Of a stretch of DNA of 64,000 bases, positions 1 through 31,931 are shown piece after piece. Positions within the stretch are counted from its first letter, which is position 1, and each line of letters opens with the position of its first letter. Below the pieces are notes generated by a model. It had not been told where the DNA came from and did no database searches. It saw nothing but the letters and a program-made list of their open reading frames with translations. The DNA is from Rebecca billardiae RCC1528 (Eukaryota > Protista > Haptophyta), in the NCBI GenBank assembly GCA_965240325.2, contig OZ251222.1, positions 2,356,001 to 2,420,000 of the forward strand, read 5' to 3'. The translations under genes were made by a program, and so were the position numbers.

Positions 1-893
1 AGCGCCTGGGCCTCCTTGTCCAGGAAAGGCAGCACGTCGTTCAGGTACTCCTTCCAGCACACGCCACGGCACTGCTTGCCGCGACCATTCTCATGCGTGC
101 GGCCGTGAGTGCCCGTGGCAAAATAGAGCGGCGTGATGCCGCGAGAGCAGGCGCCGGCGTAGCCATGGATCACGCAGTCACCTGCCTGGACCTGGTTCAG
201 CTTGCGCTTGGGCTCGTCACGCAGCGTCCACGACATCACCGTGCTCCGGTTCGTGACGTCGAACTTGAAGTACTTCGAGTCGGTGAAGAACAGCCTGTCA
301 ACCATCGCCTTGACTCTCTGCAGCCACCGTGCGAACGCCACCCGCTTCTTCGCCTGCTGAGCCGTGATCTGCTTCCTCACCTTGAGCGGCTCCCAATCCA
401 TCTTCTTCCGCGCCGCGCGGCGTAGCGTCTCGTCGGAGACGTCGAGCGCGGACGCATCGAGCGATCCAGCACCGACGGCGCGGCACGCAGCCTTCCGCAC
501 ACTCTGACCAGCCGGCCCGGCGCTGAGCTCGGACGTAAGCGCCGCCTGCGCCTTGGCACTGAGGCGTGGGCGTGGACCGCGCTTCGGCTTCCCGTCAGCA
601 TCGATGTGCCAGCCCTCCGTGTGCCAGTCCATGAACCACTTCTTCATCGTCTTCTCGGTGACCTCGGCCGACCGCGCCGCCCTCTGGAAAGCTGAGGCCA
701 ACGGAGAGCCTTCATTGAGGCACAGCACGCACGCGCCGATCGCATGGTGAAACCTCTCCGCAGGGCCCAGGGCCTTCGGGTTGTAATCCAGAGCAATACA
801 CTCCCGCGATACCCGCCTGTTCGGAGCGTAGCCGACGCGGTGGGCGCCTTTGCGCCCGCGCCGATCTTTGGGCGCGGTCGGCGCGCGGCCCAT
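1..893 (-). CDS. Tc1/mariner-family transposase, 5' part (truncated by window edge)
   Basis: ATG at 893-891; same sequence as the N-terminal part of ORF 11053..12354 (offset 11461). Confidence 0.9.
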   Translation of the reverse strand, partial: MGRAPTAPKDRRGRKGAHRVGYAPNRRVSRECIALDYNPKALGPAERFHHAIGACVLCLNEGSPLASAFQRAARSAEVTEKTMKKWFMDWHTEGWHIDADGKPKRGPRPRLSAKAQAALTSELSAGPAGQSVRKAACRAVGAGSLDASALDVSDETLRRAARKKMDWEPLKVRKQITAQQAKKRVAFARWLQRVKAMVDRLFFTDSKYFKFDVTNRSTVMSWTLRDEPKRKLNQVQAGDCVIHGYAGACSRGITPLYFATGTHGRTHENGRGKQCRGVCWKEYLNDVLPFLDKEAQA

Positions 894-1371
894 CAGCCGC
901 CGCCGGCTGCTTGGCCACGACCGAAGATGAGTGCACGTTACGTCCCGAGCCGCCCAAAGTTGATCTTACAGCTGACGAAGCGGTGTGGCCTCTATTCGAA
1001 CTCGTTCCGTCCATGGCGAGCGCCCCATCGACGCAGCCGCCGCGTGCGCTGGGGCCGCACGCCCTCGCGGATGTGCGCTGGGCACGAGCTCGGCGCCACG
1101 GGTTGAGCTCGTCGAGCTATGACAAGCGGCGTGGCGCAAGTCCAACCCAGTGGAGGCCCCAACTGCCGGCCCCGCCGCCGCGCGGGAGCGTCCGATTAAC
1201 CTCAGCTGCTCTGCGCAAGATGTGGGCTCCTGTGCCCCACCAACTCGCCGGAGGCGGACGACGCGCTGGGATCGCTGCACGGCGGGAATATCCCCGACCC
1301 ATGTGGACCGACGCCGGCCTCGCTCGCCGTCGCCCTCGCCCTCGTTCCGACTTTTCTACTACCTGCTCACT
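1..1371 (-). mobile_element. Element A, copy 0 (right part only): IS630/Tc1/mariner-type DNA transposon
   Basis: Matches 11462-12832 wherever compared; ends CTGCTCACT (1363-1371) followed by TA (1372-1373). Confidence 0.9.
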
Positions 1372-1373: not shown

Positions 1374-2163
1374 GGGACCCACAAATTTAGTTGCCGGCTG
1401 CAGCAGGCACGACTTTGTCTCAGCCCGCACGCCCGCTACGCGCCGACCCGGGCAGAGCCCATCCGCCCGCGCATGCACCAGGCCCAGCCGCGTCAGTACA
1501 TACCCACCCGGCCGCGGCACCCGCGCTCTGTGCGCCACGGTGTCGATGCGCCCGGCAGTCGGTGCGCATGCACGAGCCAGCCGGCGGGCAGCTACGGGCT
1601 GGTTTTCGGCGTGGAGCGCGGTCGTGTGAGCTGCATTAATTCAGCTGACCCCCGGCTTTTGTGCATTCGGGAGTCGTGCTGCTACGGTGGGCGTGCCACG
1701 CGCCAACTCGACGCTGGCAAAATTAGGCGACGAAAGTGCACGCGCAGCCACACGCAGCCCATATTGATGCTCTCGGAGCAGGCTCGGGCATGCACTCGAT
1801 CGGCTCTGGCTGACGGCAGCGCCAAGCTGGCGGCGCGGCGCGAGGGTGCATGCGTGGCGTGGGCGGAGCTACGTCGCACACGCACCGCGCGGCGCGCGGC
1901 TCAGCGCACGGAGGCTGCCGACAGCCGGCGGCACGCAGGCAGGTCTGCTCGCCGCCAGTCGAGCTCGCCGGCCGCCGGGTACCAAACGTCAACCCAGGAT
2001 GCACAGCCACGCCTATTTGCGAGGACTCGAGCAATCGGGTCCGGGCGCACCTCATGTGCACGGCAGTGGAGTGGGCCAAGTACGCCCCTGGTATGGTGGC
2101 GCGCCGCTGCTTTGCTGCGCTGATATGGCGAACAATGTCGGGAGGCTTAAACTTGTGAGGGAC
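1374..2163. mobile_element. Segment B (790 bp), TA-flanked, probable non-autonomous element with imperfect TIRs
   Basis: TA on both sides; left end GGGACCCACAAATTTA vs reverse complement of right end GTCCCTCACAAGTTTA (11/16); cleanly absent at junction 22625-22628. Confidence 0.6.
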
Positions 2164-2176
2164 TAAGTGAGCAGCC

Positions 2177-5100
2177 TCGGCTGAGGCCGTGAGCTGCCGT
2201 AGGCTGATCTGACCCGACAAAAGTCGGCGCGCGAGCGCGCGCGCGCGCGGCGCGGCGCCGCCCCGCTGGCACGTGGGCTCGGTGTGCCTGGGCCGCGCCG
2301 AGTGCCCCGCACCCGGATCTCGCCCAGCTAGCTCGTCCTCGCCGCGCTCTGAGGCCCCCGTAGCAGTCGTAGCTGCTCGCCGCCGCCGCAGATCGTGAAG
2401 ACCAGCTGCTGTCAGCTGCTCGCTCTGAGCCGGGACATGGGGCCGCGTGGAGGAGGCGCCGTGCGGCCGGGCGCGCGCGTGCGCGTCGAGCGGCCCCTGG
2501 GCGCACTGCTCACGCGTCGGCGCGCCCGCCCGGCGCGCGCATCATCGCTCAGTCGCGCCGCTCTGCTGAGCTAGCCGCCGCTGGTCGCAGCCGTCGGCTG
2601 AGGCCGTGAGCTGCCGTAGGCTGATCTGACCCGACAAAAGTCGGCGCGCGAGCGCGCGCGCGCGCGGCGCGGCGCCGCCCCGCTGGCACGTGGGCTCGGT
2701 GTGCCTGGGCCGCGCCGAGTGCCCCGCACCCCGATCTCGCCCAGCTAGCTCGTCCTCGCCGCGCTCTGAGGCCCCCGTAGCAGTCGTAGCTGCTCGCCGC
2801 CGCCGCAGATCGTGAAGACCAGCTGCTGTCAGCTGCTCGCTCTGAGCCGGGACATGGGGCCGCGAGGAGGAGGCGCCGTGCGGCCGGGCGCGCGCGTGCG
2901 CGTCGAGCGGCCCCGGGGCGCACTGCTCACGTGTCGGCGTGCCCGCCCGGCGCGCGCATCATCGCTCAGTCGCGCCGCTCTGCTGAGCTAGCCGCCGCTG
3001 GTCGCAGCCGTCGGCTGAGGCCGTGAGCTGCCGTCAGCTGATCTGACCCGACAAAAGTCGGCGCGAGCGCGCGCGCGCGCGCGGCGCCGCGCCGCCCCGC
3101 TGGCACGTGGGCTCGGTGTGCCTGGGCCACGCAGAGCACCCCGCACCCGGATCTCGCCCAGCTAGCTCGTCCTCGCCGCGCTCTGAGGCCCCCGTAGCAG
3201 TCGTAGCTGCTCGCCGCCGCCGCAGATCGTGAAGACCAGCTGCTGTCAGCTGCTCGCTCTGAGCCGGGACATGGGGCCGCGAGGAGGAGGCGCCGTGCGG
3301 CCGGGCGCGCGCGTGCGCGTCGAGCGGCCCCGGGGCGCACTGCTCACGCGTCGGCGTGCCCGCCCGGCGCGCGCATCATCGCTCAGTCGCGCCGCTCTGC
3401 TGAGCTAGCCGCCGCTGGTCGCAGCCGTCGGCTGAGGCCGTGAGCTGCCGTAAGCTGATCTGACCCGACAAAAGTCGGCGCGCGAGCGCGCGCGCGCGGC
3501 GCGCCGCGCCACCTCGCTGGCACGTGGGCTCGGTGCGCCTGGGCCGCGCCGAGCACCCCGCACCCGGATCTCGCCCAGCTAGCTCGTCCTCGCCGCGCTC
3601 TGAGGCCCCCGTAGCAGTCGTAGCTGCTCGCCGCCGCCGCAGATCGTGAAGACCAGCTGCTGTCAGCTGCTCGCTCTGAGCCGGGACATGGGGCCGCGTG
3701 GAGGAGACGCCGTGCGGCCGGGCGCGCGCGTGCGCGTCGAGCGGCACCCGGGCGCACTGCTCACGTGTCGGCGCGCCCGCCCGGCGCGCGCATCATCGCT
3801 CAGTCGCGCCGCTCTGCTGAGCTAGCCGCCGCTGGTCGCAGCCGTCGGCTGAGGCCGTGAGCTGCCGTAAGCTGATCTGACCCGACAAAAGTCGGCGCGC
3901 GAGCGCGCGCGCGCGGCGCGCCGCGCCACCTCGCTGGCACGTGGGCTCGGTGCGCCTGGGCCGCGCCGAGCGTCCCGCACCCCGATCGCGCCCAGCCCGC
4001 GCGTCCTCGCCGCGCTCTGAGGTCCCCGTAGCAGTCGTAGCTGCTCGCCGCCGCCGCAGATCGTGAAGACCAGTTGCTGTCAGCTGCTCGCTCTGAGCCG
4101 GGACATGGGGCCGCGAGGAGGAGGCGCCGTGCGGCCGGGCGCGCGCGTGCGCGTCGAGCGGCCCCGGGGCGCACTGCTCACGCGTCGGCGTGCCCGCCCG
4201 GCGCGCGCATCATCGCTCAGTCGCGCCGCTCTGCTGAGCTAGCCGCCGCTGGTCGCAGCCGTCGGCTGAGGCCGTGAGCTGCCGTCAGCTGATCTGACCC
4301 GACAAAAGTCGGCGCGAGCGCGCGCGCGCGCGCGGCGCCGCGCCGCCCCGCTGGCACGTGGGCTCGGTGTGCCTGGGCCACGCAGAGCACCCCGCACCCG
4401 GATCTCGCCCAGCTAGCTCGTCCTCGCCGCGCTCTGAGGCCCCCGTAGCAGTCGTAGCTGCTCGCCGCCGCCGCAGATCGTGAAGACCAGCTGCTGTCAG
4501 CTGCTCGCTCTGAGCCGGGACATGGGGCCGCGAGGAGGAGGCGCCGTGCGGCCGGGCGCGCGCGTGCGCGTCGAGCGGCCCCGGGGCGCACTGCTCACGC
4601 GTCGGCGTGCCCGCCCGGCGCGCGCATCATCGCTCAGTCGCGCCGCTCTGCTGAGCTAGCCGCCGCTGGTCGCAGCCGTCGGCTGAGGCCGTGAGCTGCC
4701 GTCAGCTGATCTGACCCGACAAAAGTCGGCGCGAGCGCGCGCGCGCGCGCGGCGCCGCGCCGCCCCGCTGGCACGTGGGCTCGGTGTGCCTGGGCCACGC
4801 AGAGCACCCCGCACCCGGATCTCGCCCAGCTAGCTCGTCCTCGCCGCGCTCTGAGGCCCCCGTAGCAGTCGTAGCTGCTCGCCGCCGCCGCAGATCGTGA
4901 AGACCAGCTGCTGTCAGCTGCTCGCTCTGAGCCGGGACATGGGGCCGCGAGGAGGAGGCGCCGTGCGGCCGGGCGCGCGCGTGCGCGTCGAGCGGCCCCG
5001 GGGCGCACTGCTCACGCGTCGGCGTGCCCGCCCGGCGCGCGCATCATCGCTCAGTCGCGCCGCTCTGCTGAGCTAGCCGCCGCTGGTCGCAGCCGTCGGC

Positions 5101-8100
5101 TGAGGCCGTGAGCTGCCGTAAGCTGATCTGACCCGACAAAAGTCGGCGCGCGAGCGCGCGCGCGCGGCGCGCCGCGCCACCTCGCTGGCACGTGGGCTCG
5201 GTGCGCCTGGGCCGCGCCGAGCACCCCGCACCCGGATCTCGCCCAGCTAGCTCGTCCTCGCCGCGCTCTGAGGCCCCCGTAGCAGTCGTAGCTGCTCGCC
5301 GCCGCCGCAGATCGTGAAGACCAGCTGCTGTCAGCTGCTCGCTCTGAGCCGGGACATGGGGCCGCGTGGAGGAGACGCCGTGCGGCCGGGCGCGCGCGTG
5401 CGCGTCGAGCGGCACCCGGGCGCACTGCTCACGTGTCGGCGTGCCCGCCCGGCGCGCGCATCATCGCTCAGTCGCGCCGCTCTGCTGAGCTAGCCGCCGC
5501 TGGTCGCAGCCGTCGGCTGAGGCCGTGAGCTGCCGTCAGCTGATCTGACCCGACAAAAGTCGGCGCGAGCGCGCGCGCGCGCGCGGCGCCGCGCCGCCCC
5601 GCTGGCACGTGGGCTCGGTGTGCCTGGGCCACGCAGAGCACCCCGCACCCGGATCTCGCCCAGCTAGCTCGTCCTCGCCGCGCTCTGAGGCCCCCGTAGC
5701 AGTCGTAGCTGCTCGCCGCCGCCGCAGATCGTGAAGACCAGCTGCTGTCAGCTGCTCGCTCTGAGCCGGGACATGGGGCCGCGAGGAGGAGGCGCCGTGC
5801 GGCCGGGCGCGCGCGTGCGCGTCGAGCGGCCCCGGGGCGCACTGCTCACGCGTCGGCGTGCCCGCCCGGCGCGCGCATCATCGCTCAGTCGCGCCGCTCT
5901 GCTGAGCTAGCCGCCGCTGGTCGCAGCCGTCGGCTGAGGCCGTGAGCTGCCGTAAGCTGATCTGACCCGACAAAAGTCGGCGCGCGAGCGCGCGCGCGCG
6001 GCGCGCCGCGCCACCTCGCTGGCACGTGGGCTCGGTGCGCCTGGGCCGCGCCGAGCACCCCGCACCCGGATCTCGCCCAGCTAGCTCGTCCTCGCCGCGC
6101 TCTGAGGCCCCCGTAGCAGTCGTAGCTGCTCGCCGCCGCCGCAGATCGTGAAGACCAGCTGCTGTCAGCTGCTCGCTCTGAGCCGGGACATGGGGCCGCG
6201 TGGAGGAGACGCCGTGCGGCCGGGCGCGCGCGTGCGCGTCGAGCGGCACCCGGGCGCACTGCTCACGTGTCGGCGCGCCCGCCCGGCGCGCGCATCATCG
6301 CTCAGTCGCGCCGCTCTGCTGAGCTAGCCGCCGCTGGTCGCAGCCGTCGGCTGAGGCCGTGAGCTGCCGTAAGCTGATCTGACCCGACAAAAGTCGGCGC
6401 GCGAGCGCGCGCGCGCGGCGCGCCGCGCCACCTCGCTGGCACGTGGGCTCGGTGCGCCTGGGCCGCGCCGAGCGTCCCGCACCCCGATCGCGCCCAGCCC
6501 GCGCGTCCTCGCCGCGCTCTGAGGTCCCCGTAGCAGTCGTAGCTGCTCGCCGCCGCCGCAGATCGTGAAGACCAGTTGCTGTCAGCTGCTCGCTCTGAGC
6601 CGGGACATGGGGCCGCGAGGAGGAGGCGCCGTGCGGCCGGGCGCGCGCGTGCGCGTCGAGCGGCCCCGGGGCGCACTGCTCACGCGTCGGCGTGCCCGCC
6701 CGGCGCGCGCATCATCGCTCAGTCGCGCCGCTCTGCTGAGCTAGCCGCCGCTGGTCGCAGCCGTCGGCTGAGGCCGTGAGCTGCCGTCAGCTGATCTGAC
6801 CCGACAAAAGTCGGCGCGAGCGCGCGCGCGCGCGCGGCGCCGCGCCGCCCCGCTGGCACGTGGGCTCGGTGTGCCTGGGCCACGCAGAGCACCCCGCACC
6901 CGGATCTCGCCCAGCTAGCTCGTCCTCGCCGCGCTCTGAGGCCCCCGTAGCAGTCGTAGCTGCTCGCCGCCGCCGCAGATCGTGAAGACCAGCTGCTGTC
7001 AGCTGCTCGCTCTGAGCCGGGACATGGGGCCGCGAGGAGGAGGCGCCGTGCGGCCGGGCGCGCGCGTGCGCGTCGAGCGGCCCCGGGGCGCACTGCTCAC
7101 GCGTCGGCGTGCCCGCCCGGCGCGCGCATCATCGCTCAGTCGCGCCGCTCTGCTGAGCTAGCCGCCGCTGGTCGCAGCCGTCGGCTGAGGCCGTGAGCTG
7201 CCGTCAGCTGATCTGACCCGACAAAAGTCGGCGCGAGCGCGCGCGCGCGCGCGGCGCCGCGCCGCCCCGCTGGCACGTGGGCTCGGTGTGCCTGGGCCAC
7301 GCAGAGCACCCCGCACCCGGATCTCGCCCAGCTAGCTCGTCCTCGCCGCGCTCTGAGGCCCCCGTAGCAGTCGTAGCTGCTCGCCGCCGCCGCAGATCGT
7401 GAAGACCAGCTGCTGTCAGCTGCTCGCTCTGAGCCGGGACATGGGGCCGCGAGGAGGAGGCGCCGTGCGGCCGGGCGCGCGCGTGCGCGTCGAGCGGCCC
7501 CGGGGCGCACTGCTCACGCGTCGGCGTGCCCGCCCGGCGCGCGCATCATCGCTCAGTCGCGCCGCTCTGCTGAGCTAGCCGCCGCTGGTCGCAGCCGTCG
7601 GCTGAGGCCGTGAGCTGCCGTAAGCTGATCTGACCCGACAAAAGTCGGCGCGCGAGCGCGCGCGCGCGGCGCGCCGCGCCACCTCGCTGGCACGTGGGCT
7701 CGGTGCGCCTGGGCCGCGCCGAGCACCCCGCACCCGGATCTCGCCCAGCTAGCTCGTCCTCGCCGCGCTCTGAGGCCCCCGTAGCAGTCGTAGCTGCTCG
7801 CCGCCGCCGCAGATCGTGAAGACCAGCTGCTGTCAGCTGCTCGCTCTGAGCCGGGACATGGGGCCGCGTGGAGGAGACGCCGTGCGGCCGGGCGCGCGCG
7901 TGCGCGTCGAGCGGCACCCGGGCGCACTGCTCACGTGTCGGCGCGCCCGCCCGGCGCGCGCATCATCGCTCAGTCGCGCCGCTCTGCTGAGCTAGCCGCC
8001 GCTGGTCGCAGCCGTCGGCTGAGGCCGTGAGCTGCCGTAAGCTGATCTGACCCGACAAAAGTCGGCGCGCGAGCGCGCGCGCGCGGCGCGCCGCGCCACC

Positions 8101-10933
8101 TCGCTGGCACGTGGGCTCGGTGCGCCTGGGCCGCGCCGAGCGTCCCGCACCCCGATCGCGCCCAGCCCGCGCGTCCTCGCCGCGCTCTGAGGTCCCCGTA
8201 GCAGTCGTAGCTGCTCGCCGCCGCCGCAGATCGTGAAGACCAGTTGCTGTCAGCTGCTCGCTCTGAGCCGGGACATGGGGCCGCGAGGAGGAGGCGCCGT
8301 GCGGCCGGGCGCGCGCGTGCGCGTCGAGCGGCCCCGGGGCGCACTGCTCACGCGTCGGCGTGCCCGCCCGGCGCGCGCATCATCGCTCAGTCGCGCCGCT
8401 CTGCTGAGCTAGCCGCCGCTGGTCGCAGCCGTCGGCTGAGGCCGTGAGCTGCCGTCAGCTGATCTGACCCGACAAAAGTCGGCGCGAGCGCGCGCGCGCG
8501 CGCGGCGCCGCGCCGCCCCGCTGGCACGTGGGCTCGGTGTGCCTGGGCCACGCAGAGCACCCCGCACCCGGATCTCGCCCAGCTAGCTCGTCCTCGCCGC
8601 GCTCTGAGGCCCCCGTAGCAGTCGTAGCTGCTCGCCGCCGCCGCAGATCGTGAAGACCAGCTGCTGTCAGCTGCTCGCTCTGAGCCGGGACATGGGGCCG
8701 CGAGGAGGAGGCGCCGTGCGGCCGGGCGCGCGCGTGCGCGTCGAGCGGCCCCGGGGCGCACTGCTCACGCGTCGGCGTGCCCGCCCGGCGCGCGCATCAT
8801 CGCTCAGTCGCGCCGCTCTGCTGAGCTAGCCGCCGCTGGTCGCAGCCGTCGGCTGAGGCCGTGAGCTGCCGTCAGCTGATCTGACCCGACAAAAGTCGGC
8901 GCGAGCGCGCGCGCGCGCGCGGCGCCGCGCCGCCCCGCTGGCACGTGGGCTCGGTGTGCCTGGGCCACGCAGAGCACCCCGCACCCGGATCTCGCCCAGC
9001 TAGCTCGTCCTCGCCGCGCTCTGAGGCCCCCGTAGCAGTCGTAGCTGCTCGCCGCCGCCGCAGATCGTGAAGACCAGCTGCTGTCAGCTGCTCGCTCTGA
9101 GCCGGGACATGGGGCCGCGAGGAGGAGGCGCCGTGCGGCCGGGCGCGCGCGTGCGCGTCGAGCGGCCCCGGGGCGCACTGCTCACGCGTCGGCGTGCCCG
9201 CCCGGCGCGCGCATCATCGCTCAGTCGCGCCGCTCTGCTGAGCTAGCCGCCGCTGGTCGCAGCCGTCGGCTGAGGCCGTGAGCTGCCGTAAGCTGATCTG
9301 ACCCGACAAAAGTCGGCGCGCGAGCGCGCGCGCGCGGCGCGCCGCGCCACCTCGCTGGCACGTGGGCTCGGTGCGCCTGGGCCGCGCCGAGCACCCCGCA
9401 CCCGGATCTCGCCCAGCTAGCTCGTCCTCGCCGCGCTCTGAGGCCCCCGTAGCAGTCGTAGCTGCTCGCCGCCGCCGCAGATCGTGAAGACCAGCTGCTG
9501 TCAGCTGCTCGCTCTGAGCCGGGACATGGGGCCGCGTGGAGGAGACGCCGTGCGGCCGGGCGCGCGCGTGCGCGTCGAGCGGCACCCGGGCGCACTGCTC
9601 ACGTGTCGGCGCGCCCGCCCGGCGCGCGCATCATCGCTCAGTCGCGCCGCTCTGCTGAGCTAGCCGCCGCTGGTCGCAGCCGTCGGCTGAGGCCGTGAGC
9701 TGCCGTAAGCTGATCTGACCCGACAAAAGTCGGCGCGCGAGCGCGCGCGCGCGGCGCGCCGCGCCACCTCGCTGGCACGTGGGCTCGGTGCGCCTGGGCC
9801 GCGCCGAGCGTCCCGCACCCCGATCGCGCCCAGCCCGCGCGTCCTCGCCGCGCTCTGAGGTCCCCGTAGCAGTCGTAGCTGCTCGCCGCCGCCGCAGATC
9901 GTGAAGACCAGTTGCTGTCAGCTGCTCGCTCTGAGCCGGGACATGGGGCCGCGAGGAGGAGGCGCCGTGCGGCCGGGCGCGCGCGTGCGCGTCGAGCGGC
10001 CCCGGGGCGCACTGCTCACGCGTCGGCGTGCCCGCCCGGCGCGCGCATCATCGCTCAGTCGCGCCGCTCTGCTGAGCTAGCCGCCGCTGGTCGCAGCCGT
10101 CGGCTGAGGCCGTGAGCTGCCGTCAGCTGATCTGACCCGACAAAAGTCGGCGCGAGCGCGCGCGCGCGCGCGGCGCCGCGCCGCCCCGCTGGCACGTGGG
10201 CTCGGTGTGCCTGGGCCACGCAGAGCACCCCGCACCCGGATCTCGCCCAGCTAGCTCGTCCTCGCCGCGCTCTGAGGCCCCCGTAGCAGTCGTAGCTGCT
10301 CGCCGCCGCCGCAGATCGTGAAGACCAGCTGCTGTCAGCTGCTCGCTCTGAGCCGGGACATGGGGCCGCGAGGAGGAGGCGCCGTGCGGCCGGGCGCGCG
10401 CGTGCGCGTCGAGCGGCCCCGGGGCGCACTGCTCACGCGTCGGCGTGCCCGCCCGGCGCGCGCATCATCGCTCAGTCGCGCCGCTCTGCTGAGCTAGCCG
10501 CCGCTGGTCGCAGCCGTCGGCTGAGGCCGTGAGCTGCCGTAGGCTGATCTGACCCGACAAAAGTCGGCGCGCGAGCGCGCGCTCGCGCGGCGCGGCGCCG
10601 CCCCGCTGGCACGTGGGCTCGGTGTGCCTGGGCCGCGCCGAGTGCCCCGCACCCCGATCTCGCCCAGCTAGCTCGTCCTCGCCGCGCTCTGAGGCCCCCG
10701 TAGCAGTCGTAGCTGCTCGCCGCCGCCGCAGATCGTGAAGACCAGTTGCTGTCAGCTGCTCGCTCTGAGCCGGGACATGGGGCCGCGTGGAGGAGGCGCC
10801 GTGCGGCCGGGCGCGCGCGCGCGCGTCGAGCGGCCCCGGGGCGCACTGCTCACGCGTCGGCGTGCCCGCCCGGCGCGCACATCATCGCTCAGTCGCGCCG
10901 CTCTGCTGAGCTAGCCGCCGCTGGTCGCAGCTG
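2177..10933. repeat. 417-bp tandem satellite, 21 monomers, with a 1668-bp higher-order repeat
   Basis: Exact 417-bp period in the sequence and ORF track; variant order a b c d e c c d c d e c c d e c c d e c z. Confidence 0.97.
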
Positions 10934-11052
10934 TCGTGAGACGTGACGTTAGACGTAGAGTAAGCTATAGCCTATAGGCTGATATGATATGACTCGAGAT
11001 CTACTATACTGAGCAGCTAATAAACTATACCATCATTGTCCGACACTGCTCT

Positions 11053-12354
11053 TCAGCGCACGCGCTGCTCACCCTTGGTCTCGACGCAGTCCTGCAGCCG
11101 ACGCCGATAGGATTTGAACAGCGCCTGGATGAACTTCTTGTCGTTCCGTACCTCCTCGAACTTAGCCTTCACCACCTCCTCGAACTCCTTGAAGGTTGGC
11201 CGCTGCTTGCTCGGGTTGTCGGTGCACCACTTGTGCTTCCATGCGTTGAGAAGCTGCTCCACGCGCGCCCAGACATGCTCAATGAGCGACAAGTCGGCGC
11301 TGTTCGGCGGCCAGCTACGGCCCGGCTGACCCTCGGTCGACTTGGGGCCAAGGTGTCCCTCGGGGCCAAACCGCTCGTCGAGCCATTGGCGCACAGCCAG
11401 CGCCGTGTGGGGTGAGGCACTGTCCTGCTGGAAGATCATCTGTCTGATGAAGTTGCCGAAGAGCGCCTGGGCCTCCTTGTCCAGGAAAGGCAGCACGTCG
11501 TTCAGGTACTCCTTCCAGCACACGCCACGGCACTGCTTGCCGCGACCATTCTCATGCGTGCGGCCGTGAGTGCCCGTGGCAAAATAGAGCGGCGTGATGC
11601 CGCGAGAGCAGGCGCCGGCGTAGCCATGGATCACGCAGTCACCTGCCTGGACCTGGTTCAGCTTGCGCTTGGGCTCGTCACGCAGCGTCCACGACATCAC
11701 CGTGCTCCGGTTCGTGACGTCGAACTTGAAGTACTTCGAGTCGGTGAAGAACAGCCTGTCAACCATCGCCTTGACTCTCTGCAGCCACCGTGCGAACGCC
11801 ACCCGCTTCTTCGCCTGCTGAGCCGTGATCTGCTTCCTCACCTTGAGCGGCTCCCAATCCATCTTCTTCCGCGCCGCGCGGCGTAGCGTCTCGTCGGAGA
11901 CGTCGAGCGCGGACGCATCGAGCGATCCAGCACCGACGGCGCGGCACGCAGCCTTCCGCACACTCTGACCAGCCGGCCCGGCGCTGAGCTCGGACGTAAG
12001 CGCCGCCTGCGCCTTGGCACTGAGGCGTGGGCGTGGACCGCGCTTCGGCTTCCCGTCAGCATCGATGTGCCAGCCCTCCGTGTGCCAGTCCATGAACCAC
12101 TTCTTCATCGTCTTCTCGGTGACCTCGGCCGACCGCGCCGCCCTCTGGAAAGCTGAGGCCAACGGAGAGCCTTCATTGAGGCACAGCACGCACGCGCCGA
12201 TCGCATGGTGAAACCTCTCCGCAGGGCCCAGGGCCTTCGGGTTGTAATCCAGAGCAATACACTCCCGCGATACCCGCCTGTTCGGAGCGTAGCCGACGCG
12301 GTGGGCGCCTTTGCGCCCGCGCCGATCTTTGGGCGCGGTCGGCGCGCGGCCCAT
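11053..12354 (-). CDS. IS630/Tc1/mariner DDE transposase, 433 aa (DD47E)
   Basis: GPRPR linker, FFTDSK (first D), FQQDSASPH (second D) and WPPNSADLSLIEHVW (E) match Tc1 motifs GRPR, FSDE, FQQDNA and WPxxSPDLNPIE. Confidence 0.95.
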   Translation of the reverse strand: MGRAPTAPKDRRGRKGAHRVGYAPNRRVSRECIALDYNPKALGPAERFHHAIGACVLCLNEGSPLASAFQRAARSAEVTEKTMKKWFMDWHTEGWHIDADGKPKRGPRPRLSAKAQAALTSELSAGPAGQSVRKAACRAVGAGSLDASALDVSDETLRRAARKKMDWEPLKVRKQITAQQAKKRVAFARWLQRVKAMVDRLFFTDSKYFKFDVTNRSTVMSWTLRDEPKRKLNQVQAGDCVIHGYAGACSRGITPLYFATGTHGRTHENGRGKQCRGVCWKEYLNDVLPFLDKEAQALFGNFIRQMIFQQDSASPHTALAVRQWLDERFGPEGHLGPKSTEGQPGRSWPPNSADLSLIEHVWARVEQLLNAWKHKWCTDNPSKQRPTFKEFEEVVKAKFEEVRNDKKFIQALFKSYRRRLQDCVETKGEQRVR

Positions 12355-12834
12355 CAGCCGCCGCCGGCTGCTTGGCCACGACCGAAGATGAGTGCACGTT
12401 ACGTCCCGAGCCGCCCAAAGTTGATCTTACAGCTGACGAAGCGGTGTGGCCTCTATTCGAACTCGTTCCGTCCATGGCGAGCGCCCCATCGACGCAGCCG
12501 CCGCGTGCGCTGGGGCCGCACGCCCTCGCGGATGTGCGCTGGGCACGAGCTCGGCGCCACGGGTTGAGCTCGTCGAGCTATGACAAGCGGCGTGGCGCAA
12601 GTCCAACCCAGTGGAGGCCCCAACTGCCGGCCCCGCCGCCGCGCGGGAGCGTCCGATTAACCTCAGCTGCTCTGCGCAAGATGTGGGCTCCTGTGCCCCA
12701 CCAACTCGCCGGAGGCGGACGACGCGCTGGGATCGCTGCACGGCGGGAATATCCCCGACCCATGTGGACCGACGCCGGCCTCGCTCGCCGTCGCCCTCGC
12801 CCTCGTTCCGACTTTTCTACTACCTGCTCACTTA

Positions 12835-13624
12835 GGGACCCACAAATTTAGTTGCCGGCTGCAGCAGGCACGACTTTGTCTCAGCCCGCACGCCCGCTAC
12901 GCGCCGACCCGGGCAGAGCCCATCCGCCCGCGCATGCACCAGGCCCAGCCGCGTCAGTACATACCCACCCGGCCGCGGCACCCGCGCTCTGTGCGCCACG
13001 GTGTCGATGCGCCCGGCAGTCGGTGCGCATGCACGAGCCAGCCGGCGGGCAGCTACGGGCTGGTTTTCGGCGTGGAGCGCGGTCGTGTGAGCTGCATTAA
13101 TTCAGCTGACCCCCGGCTTTTGTGCATTCGGGAGTCGTGCTGCTACGGTGGGCGTGCCACGCGCCAACTCGACGCTGGCAAAATTAGGCGACGAAAGTGC
13201 ACGCGCAGCCACACGCAGCCCATATTGATGCTCTCGGAGCAGGCTCGGGCATGCACTCGATCGGCTCTGGCTGACGGCAGCGCCAAGCTGGCGGCGCGGC
13301 GCGAGGGTGCATGCGTGGCGTGGGCGGAGCTACGTCGCACACGCACCGCGCGGCGCGCGGCTCAGCGCACGGAGGCTGCCGACAGCCGGCGGCACGCAGG
13401 CAGGTCTGCTCGCCGCCAGTCGAGCTCGCCGGCCGCCGGGTACCAAACGTCAACCCAGGATGCACAGCCACGCCTATTTGCGAGGACTCGAGCAATCGGG
13501 TCCGGGCGCACCTCATGTGCACGGCAGTGGAGTGGGCCAAGTACGCCCCTGGTATGGTGGCGCGCCGCTGCTTTGCTGCGCTGATATGGCGAACAATGTC
13601 GGGAGGCTTAAACTTGTGAGGGAC
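12835..13624. mobile_element. Segment B, copy 2 (790 bp)
   Basis: Same ends and length as 1374-2163; TA at 12833-12834 and 13625-13626. Confidence 0.6.
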
Positions 13625-13637
13625 TAAGTGAGCAGCC

Positions 13638-16600
13638 TCGGCTGAGGCCGTGAGCTGCCGTAGGCTGATCTGACCCGACAAAAGTCGGCGCGCGAGCGCG
13701 CGCGCGCGCGGCGCGGCGCCGCCCCGCTGGCACGTGGGCTCGGTGTGCCTGGGCCGCGCCGAGTGCCCCGCACCCGGATCTCGCCCAGCTAGCTCGTCCT
13801 CGCCGCGCTCTGAGGCCCCCGTAGCAGTCGTAGCTGCTCGCCGCCGCCGCAGATCGTGAAGACCAGCTGCTGTCAGCTGCTCGCTCTGAGCCGGGACATG
13901 GGGCCGCGTGGAGGAGGCGCCGTGCGGCCGGGCGCGCGCGTGCGCGTCGAGCGGCCCCTGGGCGCACTGCTCACGCGTCGGCGCGCCCGCCCGGCGCGCG
14001 CATCATCGCTCAGTCGCGCCGCTCTGCTGAGCTAGCCGCCGCTGGTCGCAGCCGTCGGCTGAGGCCGTGAGCTGCCGTAGGCTGATCTGACCCGACAAAA
14101 GTCGGCGCGCGAGCGCGCGCGCGCGCGGCGCGGCGCCGCCCCGCTGGCACGTGGGCTCGGTGTGCCTGGGCCGCGCCGAGTGCCCCGCACCCCGATCTCG
14201 CCCAGCTAGCTCGTCCTCGCCGCGCTCTGAGGCCCCCGTAGCAGTCGTAGCTGCTCGCCGCCGCCGCAGATCGTGAAGACCAGCTGCTGTCAGCTGCTCG
14301 CTCTGAGCCGGGACATGGGGCCGCGAGGAGGAGGCGCCGTGCGGCCGGGCGCGCGCGTGCGCGTCGAGCGGCCCCGGGGCGCACTGCTCACGTGTCGGCG
14401 TGCCCGCCCGGCGCGCGCATCATCGCTCAGTCGCGCCGCTCTGCTGAGCTAGCCGCCGCTGGTCGCAGCCGTCGGCTGAGGCCGTGAGCTGCCGTCAGCT
14501 GATCTGACCCGACAAAAGTCGGCGCGAGCGCGCGCGCGCGCGCGGCGCCGCGCCGCCCCGCTGGCACGTGGGCTCGGTGTGCCTGGGCCACGCAGAGCAC
14601 CCCGCACCCGGATCTCGCCCAGCTAGCTCGTCCTCGCCGCGCTCTGAGGCCCCCGTAGCAGTCGTAGCTGCTCGCCGCCGCCGCAGATCGTGAAGACCAG
14701 CTGCTGTCAGCTGCTCGCTCTGAGCCGGGACATGGGGCCGCGTGGAGGAGGCGCCGTGCGGCCGGGCGCGCGCGTGCGCGTCGAGCGGCCCCTGGGCGCA
14801 CTGCTCACGCGTCGGCGCGCCCGCCCGGCGCGCGCATCATCGCTCAGTCGCGCCGCTCTGCTGAGCTAGCCGCCGCTGGTCGCAGCCGTCGGCTGAGGCC
14901 GTGAGCTGCCGTAGGCTGATCTGACCCGACAAAAGTCGGCGCGCGAGCGCGCGCGCGCGCGGCGCGGCGCCGCCCCGCTGGCACGTGGGCTCGGTGTGCC
15001 TGGGCCGCGCCGAGTGCCCCGCACCCCGATCTCGCCCAGCTAGCTCGTCCTCGCCGCGCTCTGAGGCCCCCGTAGCAGTCGTAGCTGCTCGCCGCCGCCG
15101 CAGATCGTGAAGACCAGCTGCTGTCAGCTGCTCGCTCTGAGCCGGGACATGGGGCCGCGAGGAGGAGGCGCCGTGCGGCCGGGCGCGCGCGTGCGCGTCG
15201 AGCGGCCCCGGGGCGCACTGCTCACGTGTCGGCGTGCCCGCCCGGCGCGCGCATCATCGCTCAGTCGCGCCGCTCTGCTGAGCTAGCCGCCGCTGGTCGC
15301 AGCCGTCGGCTGAGGCCGTGAGCTGCCGTCAGCTGATCTGACCCGACAAAAGTCGGCGCGAGCGCGCGCGCGCGCGCGGCGCCGCGCCGCCCCGCTGGCA
15401 CGTGGGCTCGGTGTGCCTGGGCCACGCAGAGCACCCCGCACCCGGATCTCGCCCAGCTAGCTCGTCCTCGCCGCGCTCTGAGGCCCCCGTAGCAGTCGTA
15501 GCTGCTCGCCGCCGCCGCAGATCGTGAAGACCAGCTGCTGTCAGCTGCTCGCTCTGAGCCGGGACATGGGGCCGCGAGGAGGAGGCGCCGTGCGGCCGGG
15601 CGCGCGCGTGCGCGTCGAGCGGCCCCGGGGCGCACTGCTCACGCGTCGGCGTGCCCGCCCGGCGCGCGCATCATCGCTCAGTCGCGCCGCTCTGCTGAGC
15701 TAGCCGCCGCTGGTCGCAGCCGTCGGCTGAGGCCGTGAGCTGCCGTAAGCTGATCTGACCCGACAAAAGTCGGCGCGCGAGCGCGCGCGCGCGGCGCGCC
15801 GCGCCACCTCGCTGGCACGTGGGCTCGGTGCGCCTGGGCCGCGCCGAGCACCCCGCACCCGGATCTCGCCCAGCTAGCTCGTCCTCGCCGCGCTCTGAGG
15901 CCCCCGTAGCAGTCGTAGCTGCTCGCCGCCGCCGCAGATCGTGAAGACCAGCTGCTGTCAGCTGCTCGCTCTGAGCCGGGACATGGGGCCGCGTGGAGGA
16001 GACGCCGTGCGGCCGGGCGCGCGCGTGCGCGTCGAGCGGCACCCGGGCGCACTGCTCACGTGTCGGCGCGCCCGCCCGGCGCGCGCATCATCGCTCAGTC
16101 GCGCCGCTCTGCTGAGCTAGCCGCCGCTGGTCGCAGCCGTCGGCTGAGGCCGTGAGCTGCCGTAAGCTGATCTGACCCGACAAAAGTCGGCGCGCGAGCG
16201 CGCGCGCGCGGCGCGCCGCGCCACCTCGCTGGCACGTGGGCTCGGTGCGCCTGGGCCGCGCCGAGCGTCCCGCACCCCGATCGCGCCCAGCCCGCGCGTC
16301 CTCGCCGCGCTCTGAGGTCCCCGTAGCAGTCGTAGCTGCTCGCCGCCGCCGCAGATCGTGAAGACCAGTTGCTGTCAGCTGCTCGCTCTGAGCCGGGACA
16401 TGGGGCCGCGAGGAGGAGGCGCCGTGCGGCCGGGCGCGCGCGTGCGCGTCGAGCGGCCCCGGGGCGCACTGCTCACGCGTCGGCGTGCCCGCCCGGCGCG
16501 CGCATCATCGCTCAGTCGCGCCGCTCTGCTGAGCTAGCCGCCGCTGGTCGCAGCCGTCGGCTGAGGCCGTGAGCTGCCGTCAGCTGATCTGACCCGACAA

Positions 16601-19600
16601 AAGTCGGCGCGAGCGCGCGCGCGCGCGCGGCGCCGCGCCGCCCCGCTGGCACGTGGGCTCGGTGTGCCTGGGCCACGCAGAGCACCCCGCACCCGGATCT
16701 CGCCCAGCTAGCTCGTCCTCGCCGCGCTCTGAGGCCCCCGTAGCAGTCGTAGCTGCTCGCCGCCGCCGCAGATCGTGAAGACCAGCTGCTGTCAGCTGCT
16801 CGCTCTGAGCCGGGACATGGGGCCGCGAGGAGGAGGCGCCGTGCGGCCGGGCGCGCGCGTGCGCGTCGAGCGGCCCCGGGGCGCACTGCTCACGCGTCGG
16901 CGTGCCCGCCCGGCGCGCGCATCATCGCTCAGTCGCGCCGCTCTGCTGAGCTAGCCGCCGCTGGTCGCAGCCGTCGGCTGAGGCCGTGAGCTGCCGTCAG
17001 CTGATCTGACCCGACAAAAGTCGGCGCGAGCGCGCGCGCGCGCGCGGCGCCGCGCCGCCCCGCTGGCACGTGGGCTCGGTGTGCCTGGGCCACGCAGAGC
17101 ACCCCGCACCCGGATCTCGCCCAGCTAGCTCGTCCTCGCCGCGCTCTGAGGCCCCCGTAGCAGTCGTAGCTGCTCGCCGCCGCCGCAGATCGTGAAGACC
17201 AGCTGCTGTCAGCTGCTCGCTCTGAGCCGGGACATGGGGCCGCGAGGAGGAGGCGCCGTGCGGCCGGGCGCGCGCGTGCGCGTCGAGCGGCCCCGGGGCG
17301 CACTGCTCACGCGTCGGCGTGCCCGCCCGGCGCGCGCATCATCGCTCAGTCGCGCCGCTCTGCTGAGCTAGCCGCCGCTGGTCGCAGCCGTCGGCTGAGG
17401 CCGTGAGCTGCCGTAAGCTGATCTGACCCGACAAAAGTCGGCGCGCGAGCGCGCGCGCGCGGCGCGCCGCGCCACCTCGCTGGCACGTGGGCTCGGTGCG
17501 CCTGGGCCGCGCCGAGCACCCCGCACCCGGATCTCGCCCAGCTAGCTCGTCCTCGCCGCGCTCTGAGGCCCCCGTAGCAGTCGTAGCTGCTCGCCGCCGC
17601 CGCAGATCGTGAAGACCAGCTGCTGTCAGCTGCTCGCTCTGAGCCGGGACATGGGGCCGCGTGGAGGAGACGCCGTGCGGCCGGGCGCGCGCGTGCGCGT
17701 CGAGCGGCACCCGGGCGCACTGCTCACGTGTCGGCGCGCCCGCCCGGCGCGCGCATCATCGCTCAGTCGCGCCGCTCTGCTGAGCTAGCCGCCGCTGGTC
17801 GCAGCCGTCGGCTGAGGCCGTGAGCTGCCGTAAGCTGATCTGACCCGACAAAAGTCGGCGCGCGAGCGCGCGCGCGCGGCGCGCCGCGCCACCTCGCTGG
17901 CACGTGGGCTCGGTGCGCCTGGGCCGCGCCGAGCGTCCCGCACCCCGATCGCGCCCAGCCCGCGCGTCCTCGCCGCGCTCTGAGGTCCCCGTAGCAGTCG
18001 TAGCTGCTCGCCGCCGCCGCAGATCGTGAAGACCAGTTGCTGTCAGCTGCTCGCTCTGAGCCGGGACATGGGGCCGCGAGGAGGAGGCGCCGTGCGGCCG
18101 GGCGCGCGCGTGCGCGTCGAGCGGCCCCGGGGCGCACTGCTCACGCGTCGGCGTGCCCGCCCGGCGCGCGCATCATCGCTCAGTCGCGCCGCTCTGCTGA
18201 GCTAGCCGCCGCTGGTCGCAGCCGTCGGCTGAGGCCGTGAGCTGCCGTCAGCTGATCTGACCCGACAAAAGTCGGCGCGAGCGCGCGCGCGCGCGCGGCG
18301 CCGCGCCGCCCCGCTGGCACGTGGGCTCGGTGTGCCTGGGCCACGCAGAGCACCCCGCACCCGGATCTCGCCCAGCTAGCTCGTCCTCGCCGCGCTCTGA
18401 GGCCCCCGTAGCAGTCGTAGCTGCTCGCCGCCGCCGCAGATCGTGAAGACCAGCTGCTGTCAGCTGCTCGCTCTGAGCCGGGACATGGGGCCGCGAGGAG
18501 GAGGCGCCGTGCGGCCGGGCGCGCGCGTGCGCGTCGAGCGGCCCCGGGGCGCACTGCTCACGCGTCGGCGTGCCCGCCCGGCGCGCGCATCATCGCTCAG
18601 TCGCGCCGCTCTGCTGAGCTAGCCGCCGCTGGTCGCAGCCGTCGGCTGAGGCCGTGAGCTGCCGTCAGCTGATCTGACCCGACAAAAGTCGGCGCGAGCG
18701 CGCGCGCGCGCGCGGCGCCGCGCCGCCCCGCTGGCACGTGGGCTCGGTGTGCCTGGGCCACGCAGAGCACCCCGCACCCGGATCTCGCCCAGCTAGCTCG
18801 TCCTCGCCGCGCTCTGAGGCCCCCGTAGCAGTCGTAGCTGCTCGCCGCCGCCGCAGATCGTGAAGACCAGCTGCTGTCAGCTGCTCGCTCTGAGCCGGGA
18901 CATGGGGCCGCGAGGAGGAGGCGCCGTGCGGCCGGGCGCGCGCGTGCGCGTCGAGCGGCCCTGGGGCGCACTGCTCACGCGTCGGCGTGCCCGCCCGGCG
19001 CGCGCATCATCGCTCAGTCGCGCCGCTCTGCTGAGCTAGCCGCCGCTGGTCGCAGCCGTCGGCTGAGGCCGTGAGCTGCCGTAAGCTGATCTGACCCGAC
19101 AAAAGTCGGCGCGCGAGCGCGCGCGCGCGGCGCGCCGCGCCACCTCGCTGGCACGTGGGCTCGGTGCGCCTGGGCCGCGCCGAGCACCCCGCACCCGGAT
19201 CTCGCCCAGCTAGCTCGTCCTCGCCGCGCTCTGAGGCCCCCGTAGCAGTCGTAGCTGCTCGCCGCCGCCGCAGATCGTGAAGACCAGCTGCTGTCAGCTG
19301 CTCGCTCTGAGCCGGGACATGGGGCCGCGTGGAGGAGACGCCGTGCGGCCGGGCGCGCGCGTGCGCGTCGAGCGGCACCCGGGCGCACTGCTCACGTGTC
19401 GGCGCGCCCGCCCGGCGCGCGCATCATCGCTCAGTCGCGCCGCTCTGCTGAGCTAGCCGCCGCTGGTCGCAGCCGTCGGCTGAGGCCGTGAGCTGCCGTA
19501 AGCTGATCTGACCCGACAAAAGTCGGCGCGCGAGCGCGCGCGCGCGGCGCGCCGCGCCACCTCGCTGGCACGTGGGCTCGGTGCGCCTGGGCCGCGCCGA

Positions 19601-20726
19601 GCGTCCCGCACCCCGATCGCGCCCAGCCCGCGCGTCCTCGCCGCGCTCTGAGGTCCCCGTAGCAGTCGTAGCTGCTCGCCGCCGCCGCAGATCGTGAAGA
19701 CCAGTTGCTGTCAGCTGCTCGCTCTGAGCCGGGACATGGGGCCGCGAGGAGGAGGCGCCGTGCGGCCGGGCGCGCGCGTGCGCGTCGAGCGGCCCCGGGG
19801 CGCACTGCTCACGCGTCGGCGTGCCCGCCCGGCGCGCGCATCATCGCTCAGTCGCGCCGCTCTGCTGAGCTAGCCGCCGCTGGTCGCAGCCGTCGGCTGA
19901 GGCCGTGAGCTGCCGTCAGCTGATCTGACCCGACAAAAGTCGGCGCGAGCGCGCGCGCGCGCGCGGCGCCGCGCCGCCCCGCTGGCACGTGGGCTCGGTG
20001 TGCCTGGGCCACGCAGAGCACCCCGCACCCGGATCTCGCCCAGCTAGCTCGTCCTCGCCGCGCTCTGAGGCCCCCGTAGCAGTCGTAGCTGCTCGCCGCC
20101 GCCGCAGATCGTGAAGACCAGCTGCTGTCAGCTGCTCGCTCTGAGCCGGGACATGGGGCCGCGAGGAGGAGGCGCCGTGCGGCCGGGCGCGCGCGTGCGC
20201 GTCGAGCGGCCCCGGGGCGCACTGCTCACGCGTCGGCGTGCCCGCCCGGCGCGCGCATCATCGCTCAGTCGCGCCGCTCTGCTGAGCTAGCCGCCGCTGG
20301 TCGCAGCCGTCGGCTGAGGCCGTGAGCTGCCGTAGGCTGATCTGACCCGACAAAAGTCGGCGCGCGAGCGCGCGCTCGCGCGGCGCGGCGCCGCCCCGCT
20401 GGCACGTGGGCTCGGTGTGCCTGGGCCGCGCCGAGTGCCCCGCACCCCGATCTCGCCCAGCTAGCTCGTCCTCGCCGCGCTCTGAGGCCCCCGTAGCAGT
20501 CGTAGCTGCTCGCCGCCGCCGCAGATCGTGAAGACCAGTTGCTGTCAGCTGCTCGCTCTGAGCCGGGACATGGGGCCGCGTGGAGGAGGCGCCGTGCGGC
20601 CGGGCGCGCGCGCGCGCGTCGAGCGGCCCCGGGGCGCACTGCTCACGCGTCGGCGTGCCCGCCCGGCGCGCACATCATCGCTCAGTCGCGCCGCTCTGCT
20701 GAGCTAGCCGCCGCTGGTCGCAGCTG
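13638..20726. repeat. 417-bp tandem satellite, 17 monomers
   Basis: Variant order a b [c/a] b c d e c c d e c c' d e c z. Confidence 0.97.
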
Positions 20727-20845
20727 TCGTGAGACGTGACGTTAGACGTAGAGTAAGCTATAGCCTATAGGCTGATATGATATGACTCGAGATCTACTAT
20801 ACTGAGCAGCTAATAAACTATACCATCATTGTCCGACACTGCTCT

Positions 20846-22147
20846 TCAGCGCACGCGCTGCTCACCCTTGGTCTCGACGCAGTCCTGCAGCCGACGCCGA
20901 TAGGATTTGAACAGCGCCTGGATGAACTTCTTGTCGTTCCGTACCTCCTCGAACTTAGCCTTCACCACCTCCTCGAACTCCTTGAAGGTTGGCCGCTGCT
21001 TGCTCGGGTTGTCGGTGCACCACTTGTGCTTCCATGCGTTGAGAAGCTGCTCCACGCGCGCCCAGACATGCTCAATGAGCGACAAGTCGGCGCTGTTCGG
21101 CGGCCAGCTACGGCCCGGCTGACCCTCGGTCGACTTGGGGCCAAGGTGTCCCTCGGGGCCAAACCGCTCGTCGAGCCATTGGCGCACAGCCAGCGCCGTG
21201 TGGGGTGAGGCACTGTCCTGCTGGAAGATCATCTGTCTGATGAAGTTGCCGAAGAGCGCCTGGGCCTCCTTGTCCAGGAAAGGCAGCACGTCGTTCAGGT
21301 ACTCCTTCCAGCACACGCCACGGCACTGCTTGCCGCGACCATTCTCATGCGTGCGGCCGTGAGTGCCCGTGGCAAAATAGAGCGGCGTGATGCCGCGAGA
21401 GCAGGCGCCGGCGTAGCCATGGATCACGCAGTCACCTGCCTGGACCTGGTTCAGCTTGCGCTTGGGCTCGTCACGCAGCGTCCACGACATCACCGTGCTC
21501 CGGTTCGTGACGTCGAACTTGAAGTACTTCGAGTCGGTGAAGAACAGCCTGTCAACCATCGCCTTGACTCTCTGCAGCCACCGTGCGAACGCCACCCGCT
21601 TCTTCGCCTGCTGAGCCGTGATCTGCTTCCTCACCTTGAGCGGCTCCCAATCCATCTTCTTCCGCGCCGCGCGGCGTAGCGTCTCGTCGGAGACGTCGAG
21701 CGCGGACGCATCGAGCGATCCAGCACCGACGGCGCGGCACGCAGCCTTCCGCACACTCTGACCAGCCGGCCCGGCGCTGAGCTCGGACGTAAGCGCCGCC
21801 TGCGCCTTGGCACTGAGGCGTGGGCGTGGACCGCGCTTCGGCTTCCCGTCAGCATCGATGTGCCAGCCCTCCGTGTGCCAGTCCATGAACCACTTCTTCA
21901 TCGTCTTCTCGGTGACCTCGGCCGACCGCGCCGCCCTCTGGAAAGCTGAGGCCAACGGAGAGCCTTCATTGAGGCACAGCACGCACGCGCCGATCGCATG
22001 GTGAAACCTCTCCGCAGGGCCCAGGGCCTTCGGGTTGTAATCCAGAGCAATACACTCCCGCGATACCCGCCTGTTCGGAGCGTAGCCGACGCGGTGGGCG
22101 CCTTTGCGCCCGCGCCGATCTTTGGGCGCGGTCGGCGCGCGGCCCAT
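20846..22147 (-). CDS. IS630/Tc1/mariner transposase, 433 aa
   Basis: Translation identical to 11053..12354. Confidence 0.95.
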   Translation of the reverse strand: MGRAPTAPKDRRGRKGAHRVGYAPNRRVSRECIALDYNPKALGPAERFHHAIGACVLCLNEGSPLASAFQRAARSAEVTEKTMKKWFMDWHTEGWHIDADGKPKRGPRPRLSAKAQAALTSELSAGPAGQSVRKAACRAVGAGSLDASALDVSDETLRRAARKKMDWEPLKVRKQITAQQAKKRVAFARWLQRVKAMVDRLFFTDSKYFKFDVTNRSTVMSWTLRDEPKRKLNQVQAGDCVIHGYAGACSRGITPLYFATGTHGRTHENGRGKQCRGVCWKEYLNDVLPFLDKEAQALFGNFIRQMIFQQDSASPHTALAVRQWLDERFGPEGHLGPKSTEGQPGRSWPPNSADLSLIEHVWARVEQLLNAWKHKWCTDNPSKQRPTFKEFEEVVKAKFEEVRNDKKFIQALFKSYRRRLQDCVETKGEQRVR

Positions 22148-31812: not shown

Positions 31813-31931
31813 TCGTGAGACGTGACGTTAGACGTAGAGTAAGCTATAGCCTATAGGCTGATATGATATGACTCGAGATCTACTATACTGAGCAGCTAAT
31901 AAACTATACCATCATTGTCCGACACTGCTCT

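Follow-up and report, generated by a model that had tools for sequence, protein, structure and literature searches.

Introduction

In Galileo (P superfamily, Foldback-like), the long terminal inverted repeats (TIRs) contain tandem repeats with multiple THAP-domain binding sites, as shown by footprinting (PMC3688188). The Tc1 element Sleeping Beauty (inverted repeat/direct repeat type, IR/DR) has inner transposase sites that are not cleaved (12DR; PMC5224488), and additional binding sites remote from the cleaved tip are usual in the Tc1 group. KolobokP elements show a composite-like organization LTDR-INT-LTDR, which is accompanied by solo repeats and multimers of the form (LTDR-INT)n-LTDR (PMC9587614), and the DTC84 and pearl MITEs (miniature inverted-repeat transposable elements) of bivalves carry core repeats of variable copy number with ordered variants and a palindrome in each unit (PMC3879986). 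Here, we study a stretch of 64,000 nucleotides from Rebecca billardiae RCC1528 (contig OZ251222.1; G000:C1:2356001-2420000), referred to as the window in the following, in which arrays of a 417-bp repeat lie next to open reading frames (ORFs) for a transposase. Our preferred reading, to which we assign a probability of about one half, takes the repeat for a non-coding satellite that belongs to a modular Tc1/mariner transposon with the layout X-TA-E-TA-X and is found in the inner module E alone.

As in Galileo, the tandem repeat is borne by a transposon and its units repeat a subterminal motif. While the Galileo repeats occupy both inverted arms, the array found here is restricted to one side and one orientation within a Tc1/mariner element, and its binding sites are putative. 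Sleeping Beauty belongs to the same superfamily (our family profile matches the SB100X catalytic domain with E 5.7e-39) but has two sites per end within inverted repeats of ~230 bp, whereas here an inner module would hold 5-22 units of 417 bp, all to one side. Ordered variants whose positions are fixed at the edges of the array, a variable number of units and a palindrome per unit are shared with DTC84 and the pearl MITEs. The latter, however, are non-autonomous and hold at most 5 short repeats, while the present element is autonomous, carries 5-22 x 417 bp and has not spread its satellite outside the element.

With regard to the overall layout, the X/E element resembles KolobokP. It has an inner region (INT) between two long direct repeats with short inverted ends of its own, and both solo repeats and multimers are found. 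So far, such a composite-like layout is described for KolobokP elements. In contrast to KolobokP, which encodes a Kolobok transposase along with a His-Me finger nuclease, our element has a Tc1/mariner transposase with DD47E spacing, and we saw no nuclease. Furthermore, the joints are single TA dinucleotides, INT-TA-INT junctions without the repeat occur, and INT bears a satellite. The X/E element behaves as KolobokP does but does not belong to it. An identity with the published element 'Luffy' of Tisochrysis lutea (2,567 bp, 14-bp ends, TA, 463-aa ORF; PMC10138859), whose figures differ, is a lead only.

Composite layout of the element

The genome searched comprises 72 Mb in 41 contigs and is GC-rich and eukaryotic. 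Reading the joints along the window gives the order E0 (to 1371), TA, X, TA, E1, TA, X, TA, E2, TA, E3, TA, X, TA-TA and host DNA. Each E shows the same internal order, i.e., AGTGAGCAG, the array, an AT-richer spacer of 116 bp, an ORF of 433 amino acids (aa) on the minus strand, ~480 bp and finally CTGCTCACT. The E edges form a perfect 9-bp inverted repeat beside the TA.

Copy E0 (1-1371, minus strand) is truncated by the window start; it retains a partial transposase ORF (1-893), terminates with ...CTGCTCACT and is 100% identical to 32341-34505. It is followed by the first X module (1374-2163, plus strand), a 790-bp direct repeat with a single TA per side (1372-1373, 2164-2165) and imperfect inverted ends of its own (GGGACCCACAAATTTAG... 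/ ...CTTAAACTTGTGAGGGAC). Copy E1 (2166-12832, minus strand) opens with AGTGAGCAG, closes with CTGCTCACT and holds 21 monomers (2171-10936), the 116-bp spacer and the transposase ORF (11053-12354, minus strand). After the second X module (12835-13624, plus strand), whose E-X and X-E joints are covered by short-read contigs, copy E2 (13627-22625, minus strand) follows with 17 monomers (13632-20729) and its transposase ORF (20846-22147, minus strand). E2 and E3 abut without an X between them, such that their joint (22617-22636) is a perfect 20-bp palindrome CTGCTCACT-TA-AGTGAGCAG. Copy E3 (22628-33711, minus strand) carries 22 monomers (22633-31815), the 116-bp spacer and an intact 433-aa ORF of Tc1/mariner type (31932-33233, minus strand; D205, D311, E359). 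The multimer ends with a further X module (33714-34503, plus strand), then TA-TA and unique host DNA. Within the window, the arrays are set apart by a unit of 2.7 kb or 1.9 kb that is 100% identical at each recurrence.

The same design is found throughout the genome. All right edges of E that were read genome-wide (n=22) show CTGCTCACT-TA followed by X (16) or by another E (6), and X-TA or E-TA precedes the left edge in every case. X brackets every E cluster, with host flanks constantly of the form (T/C)ATA-X...X-TATA; flanks of the type ...TA-X...X-TA... are present at 12 loci. We counted X-E-X at 6 or more loci, among them those on contigs C10, C17, C33, C35 and C39; larger clusters are X-EEEE-X on C7, X-EEE-X on C30 and X-E-X-E-X on C3. 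The solo X modules on C8, C10 and C13 as well as an X-TA-X dimer on C1 show the same flanks as the clusters. Since E is abutted by X or by another E at all 23 genomic copies and its clusters are bracketed by X, the unit that meets host DNA is X...X. E is no free-standing transposon but forms the inner module within a composite. What the original prediction took for the right terminus of the element is thus an inner-module edge, which always adjoins X or another E.

The E-TA-E joint recurs on C7, where 4 copies of E with 5 monomers each follow one another at a spacing of 3999 bp, and on C30 with 3 copies of 7 monomers each, i.e., array lengths are equal within either cluster. Contigs from a public short-read run, which is possibly from the same sample as the assembly and thus not fully independent, show E-X and X-E joints, an E-TA-E joint that skips X and an X end with a different flank. 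At its ends, X carries imperfect inverted repeats of ~20 bp. Overall, the genome contains 23 E copies, in all of which the transposase is intact, and the 1.9-kb gene part is 99-100% identical among them. Given this integrity and identity, the E family is young.

Structure and spread of the 417-bp satellite

Tandem Repeats Finder reports a single '71-copy' array of period 417 bp from 2171 to 31815. This call resolves into three arrays of 21, 17 and 22 monomers, which sum up to 60 monomers of exactly 417 bp each and represent 10 sequence types. The array is phase-locked to the module edge, with its first period starting at base 6 of E: the edge reads AGTGA followed by the array start GCAGCC-TCGG, and the joint between monomers reads ...GCAGCCGTCGG. 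A genome-wide 28-mer count yields 232 monomers, which equals the total within the 23 E copies up to a difference of at most 3. Arrays that are independent of E were not found in the genome. The satellite is thus confined to E.

The number of monomers per E copy ranges from 5 to 22 among copies that are otherwise identical. The arrays are polar, i.e., types 'a, b' are located at the module edge and type 'g' beside the spacer and ORF, which also holds at other loci. Within the three window copies, the monomer order is nearly identical, while the interior varies ('cdec' blocks). No array is interrupted or departs from the 417-bp spacing, and insertions within arrays were not seen. Among 38 monomer variants from all loci, 43/417 columns are variable. 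The monomers have a GC content of 74-76% vs ~64% in their surroundings.

We also considered whether the monomer itself could encode something. A coding array was rejected, since stops occur in all six frames, though 417 = 3 x 139. A structured RNA or DNA was rejected as well, with no match in Rfam and unremarkable fold z-scores (+0.55, +0.68). A look for expression found the element in none of the RNA runs. A clear internal half-period of ~208 bp is absent; the best autocorrelation shift is 206 with a weak z of ~2.8. Homology of the monomer to X or to the unique part of E was considered as well and is not significant.

We suggest that the satellite arose by tandem amplification of a stretch that would have reached from the 116-bp spacer behind the stop codon to the far module edge. 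Because this stretch reaches within 5 bp of the module edge, the monomers would repeat edge sequence by descent, including the A-N-AAAAGTCGG that is common to the opposite edge. Given the array polarity, the variable interior and the 5-22 units, we infer that array length shifts by unequal exchange in the interior, while the edge monomers stay fixed. The view that the satellite is an amplified subterminal segment had been put forward in the original prediction and is supported by the array start at base 6 and the confinement of monomers to E.

Motifs of the module edge within the monomer

Each monomer had been predicted to contain the terminal motifs of the element, i.e., parts of the right edge that reads inward as GTGAGCAG-GTAGTAG-AAAAGTCGG. 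This 24-mer occurs 4 times in the window (1347-1370 at the right edge of E0, 12808-12831, 22601-22624 and 33687-33710), always on the minus strand, with 0 occurrences in shuffles. Within the E1 edge and its first monomer (type a; 2166-2593, plus strand), the individual motifs are located as follows: GTGAGCTG at 2189-2196, the hairpin CCGAC-AAAA-GTCGG (CCGACAAAAGTCGG) at 2214-2227, two copies of CTGCTCGC at 2373-2380 and 2416-2423, and CTGCTCAC at 2506-2513, all in agreement with the predicted positions. Apart from the GTAG, all listed motifs are indeed constant among the 10 window types and the 38 genome-wide variants. As evidence, this constancy is weak (five blocks free of variable columns, P=0.035), because ~90% of the monomer columns are constant anyway.

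When comparing the 40-bp right edge with the monomer, the best ungapped match is A(G/C)AAAAGTCGG, which is equalled by 1/300 dinucleotide shuffles. The exact 9-mer AAAAGTCGG is found in 0/2000 shuffles; every monomer contains it, and it lies close to both E edges, at distances of 17 bp and 54 bp. For GTGAGCAG with at most 1 mismatch, we observe 4 matches in the monomer vs 0.87 expected (P=0.009), but 10.4% of the real 8-mers from the unique part of E reach 4 or more matches, too. The enrichment of GTGAGCAG-like words is largely word bias of this DNA. The TIR-like 8-mers lie within what the GC-rich words of E yield. Gapped local alignment of the monomer and the right edge is not significant (P ~0.07-0.085), and the X-end motifs were not found in the monomer (P=0.39, 0.60). 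In summary of the shuffle-based check, a single word (A-N-AAAAGTCGG) and not the whole motif series is above chance.

A further observation concerns the right edge of E (window 1347-1371), where the 9-mer AAGTCGGAA is also part of the published Sleeping Beauty direct repeat string GAAGTCGGAAGTTTACA, which is probably a coincidence and at most a lead.

The transposase and its relatives

The transposase is the sole long ORF in E. Searches with its single sequence gave only a weak DDE_3 match in the domain search, itself as the sole match in a word-based protein search and no match in the PDB. A full library search revealed 401 relatives, in which HTH_Tnp_Tc3_2, HTH_32 and DDE_3 domains are present. 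The family profile and alignment, based on 36 sequences, matches the SB100X catalytic domain named above as well as Mos1 (E 1e-15). In addition, profile positions 26-146 match the DNA-binding domains of Tc3 (E 1.9e-6) and SETMAR. The catalytic triad D205, D311 and E359, i.e., a DD47E spacing, is invariant or nearly so within the alignment. The characteristics of the Tc1/mariner (IS630-Tc1-mariner) superfamily are thus found together, namely a DDE/D triad, an N-terminal paired-like helix-turn-helix (HTH), and TA duplication with inverted ends. Judged from profile matches and triad, the ORF encodes a divergent Tc1/mariner transposase.

For the comparison of ends and arrays we used two independent relatives, i.e., a paralogue on contig C11 (G000:C11:79000-88000; L078) and a metagenome scaffold (L080). 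Shorter contigs of the paralogue and of other relatives (L076, L077, L079, L082) do not extend far enough to reveal ends or arrays. The C11 paralogue is intact, shows 37% aa identity and was found in one copy in the genome. It is arranged as X2-TA-E2-TA-X2 (X2 at 2403-3210 of L078, 808 bp; E2 at 3213-8466; second X2 from 8468 onward) with TATA as outer flank. Its E2 module contains an array of 415 bp x 7.3 copies (5132-8159), which starts 115 bp after the stop codon, compared to 116 bp in E, and thus period (415 vs 417 bp) and offset are nearly the same. The E2 array ends 307 bp before the module edge.

The monomers of E and E2 show no detectable similarity, and an in-register rotation test ranks the actual register 268/417. 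Homology of the two monomers was rejected, since the local alignment is driven by GC repeats. Matches of the E2 monomer to its own E2 and X2 end motifs are not significant (best P=0.06). While the inverted ends of X recur in conserved form in X2, the E-type edges have only TA-AGT in common, and E2 is essentially without an inverted repeat.

The metagenome scaffold (6254 bp, 34% aa identity) reads Y (795 bp)-TA-INT-TA-INT-TA-Y-TA-INT with TATA outside. Its INT modules are 2.2 kb long, Y contains a 152-aa ORF on the minus strand, and a tandem array was not found in this scaffold. Given that the design is shared by the C11 paralogue and this scaffold, the modular layout with single-TA joints, including INT-TA-INT, is family-wide, while the satellite is a feature of the E/E2 branch. 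Beside these relatives, we noticed two further intact paralogues with 33% aa identity and open frames of 437 aa (G000:C29:738919-739698, G000:C20:1683511-1684290).

Weighing a passive satellite against functional arrays

Some observations weigh against a purely passive satellite. Foremost, the paralogue keeps the array offset (115/116 bp) and the period (415/417 bp) despite zero detectable sequence similarity, which suggests either that the array has been retained for long or that it is under a constraint left unexplained by such a satellite. This conserved offset and period is the most interesting point and keeps some functional reading alive. Furthermore, every E copy holds at least 5 monomers. 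Finally, the E edges may be real transposase substrates, because they form the perfect 9-bp inverted repeat by the TA, E-TA-E joints recur and INT-TA-INT is found in the metagenome scaffold; AAAAGTCGG would then be a plausible putative site.

The array could be functional via its length or period rather than via transposase motifs, i.e., as a chromatin or terminator/insulator element or as a homology tract for unequal exchange and multimer growth. A unit of ~416 bp could equal two nucleosomes, and the near-identical offset and period in the absence of sequence similarity, the raised GC content of the monomers and the minimum of 5 monomers per copy speak for such a role. So do the frequent multimers, the different array lengths of neighbouring copies and the presence of other arrays of ~200-214 bp period in the same window; unequal crossover has been put forward as the source of multimers in KolobokP (PMC9587614). 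However, with 5-22 monomers the total length is not fixed, the shift of 206 (z ~2.8) is no clear internal dimer of ~208 bp, and homology for unequal exchange is already provided by the 1.9-kb gene part and X. We regard a role of length or period as unlikely.

Alternatively, each monomer could be a putative transposase-binding unit, such that the array would aid synapsis, draw transposase to resident copies or titrate it. This is in accordance with the position of AAAAGTCGG near both E edges and in every monomer beyond chance, with the motif blocks free of variable columns (P=0.035) and with the match of the family profile to the paired-like DNA-binding domains of Tc3 and SETMAR. Position and period are retained in the paralogue although its monomer has fully diverged, as expected of sites that co-evolve with a DNA-binding domain, and the THAP sites in the tandem repeats of Galileo (PMC3688188) and the inner 12DR of Sleeping Beauty (PMC5224488) provide precedents. 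On the other hand, the conserved X ends that border host DNA are missing from the monomer, the E2 and X2 end motifs of the paralogue do not recur in its monomer (best P=0.06), and the TIR-like 8-mers are unexceptional among real 8-mers. Moreover, the array is one-sided with a single orientation, and the complete relative on the metagenome scaffold works without any array. We consider a binding array unlikely.

Two effects that had been proposed for such binding sites also find no counterpart in the data. The array is not needed to compensate for the 9-bp TIR, as the composite has the X inverted repeats of ~20 bp, and the uninterrupted arrays argue against an attraction of new insertions, none of which lies inside an array. 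Nor are the monomers copies of functional termini: since the ends of the mobile unit are those of X, for which the monomer has no match, the monomers would represent at most inner, non-cleaved putative docking sites. We thus infer that a binding role is lacking. Should the monomers bind transposase, the X/E element would be the first of the Tc1/mariner type whose inner sites form an array of satellite size. It would then offer a natural system in which to study the effect of additional sites on synapsis, titration and local re-insertion.

A more specific version of a functional array assumes a new Tc1/mariner lineage that is modular and ends in direct repeats, with the ~416-bp array as one of its conserved working parts, i.e., a one-sided platform of inner docking sites whose sequence co-evolves with the transposase at fixed position and period. 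Such an inner-site platform would govern synapsis, the self-targeted insertion at edges of modules (E-TA-E, X-TA-X) or the regulation of copy number; we consider it unlikely. An assembly artefact, i.e., near-identical copies or arrays that were collapsed or mis-joined, might be suspected from copies that are 100% identical over 2.7 kb but is hardly credible, given that the array patterns differ between copies in an ordered fashion, the same design recurs at no fewer than 9 loci, each of which has its own host flank, and short-read contigs (run possibly from the same sample) show the E-X, X-E and E-TA-E joints.

We thus retain the non-coding satellite carried by E as the preferred reading. Even without binding, the satellite is restricted to its parent transposon, with 232 monomers in 23 young copies, its copy number changes fast (5-22 per copy), and array position and period have outlasted all sequence similarity between paralogues. 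The system is therefore a clean starting point to ask how satellites are seeded by transposons and whether selection acts on the length or the period of an array.

Further observations on contig C1

A reverse E copy on C1 (2329795-2331692; region G000:C1:2329005-2337973) has the host flank TATACAAGTTG..., which is the same as the one to the right of the window multimer (34504-34540). At this copy, an 8-monomer array on the minus strand opposes a 3-monomer array on the plus strand across a 1.7-kb gap. The opposed arrays look like a large inverted duplication centred in the satellite.

The window contains further tandem arrays with periods of ~200-214 bp at 58598-59622, 60252-61034, 62294-62884 and 63514-64000. 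Among them, the 214-bp arrays at 60252 and 62294 together with the outer arrays look like the mirrored arms of a putative foldback-type element that is rich in the palindrome GAGCTCCGCTGGCGGAGCTC. Finally, a perfect (AT)50 microsatellite is located at 51401-51501 and a long imperfect (AG)71 tract at 46677-46825, within surrounding DNA of 64% GC.

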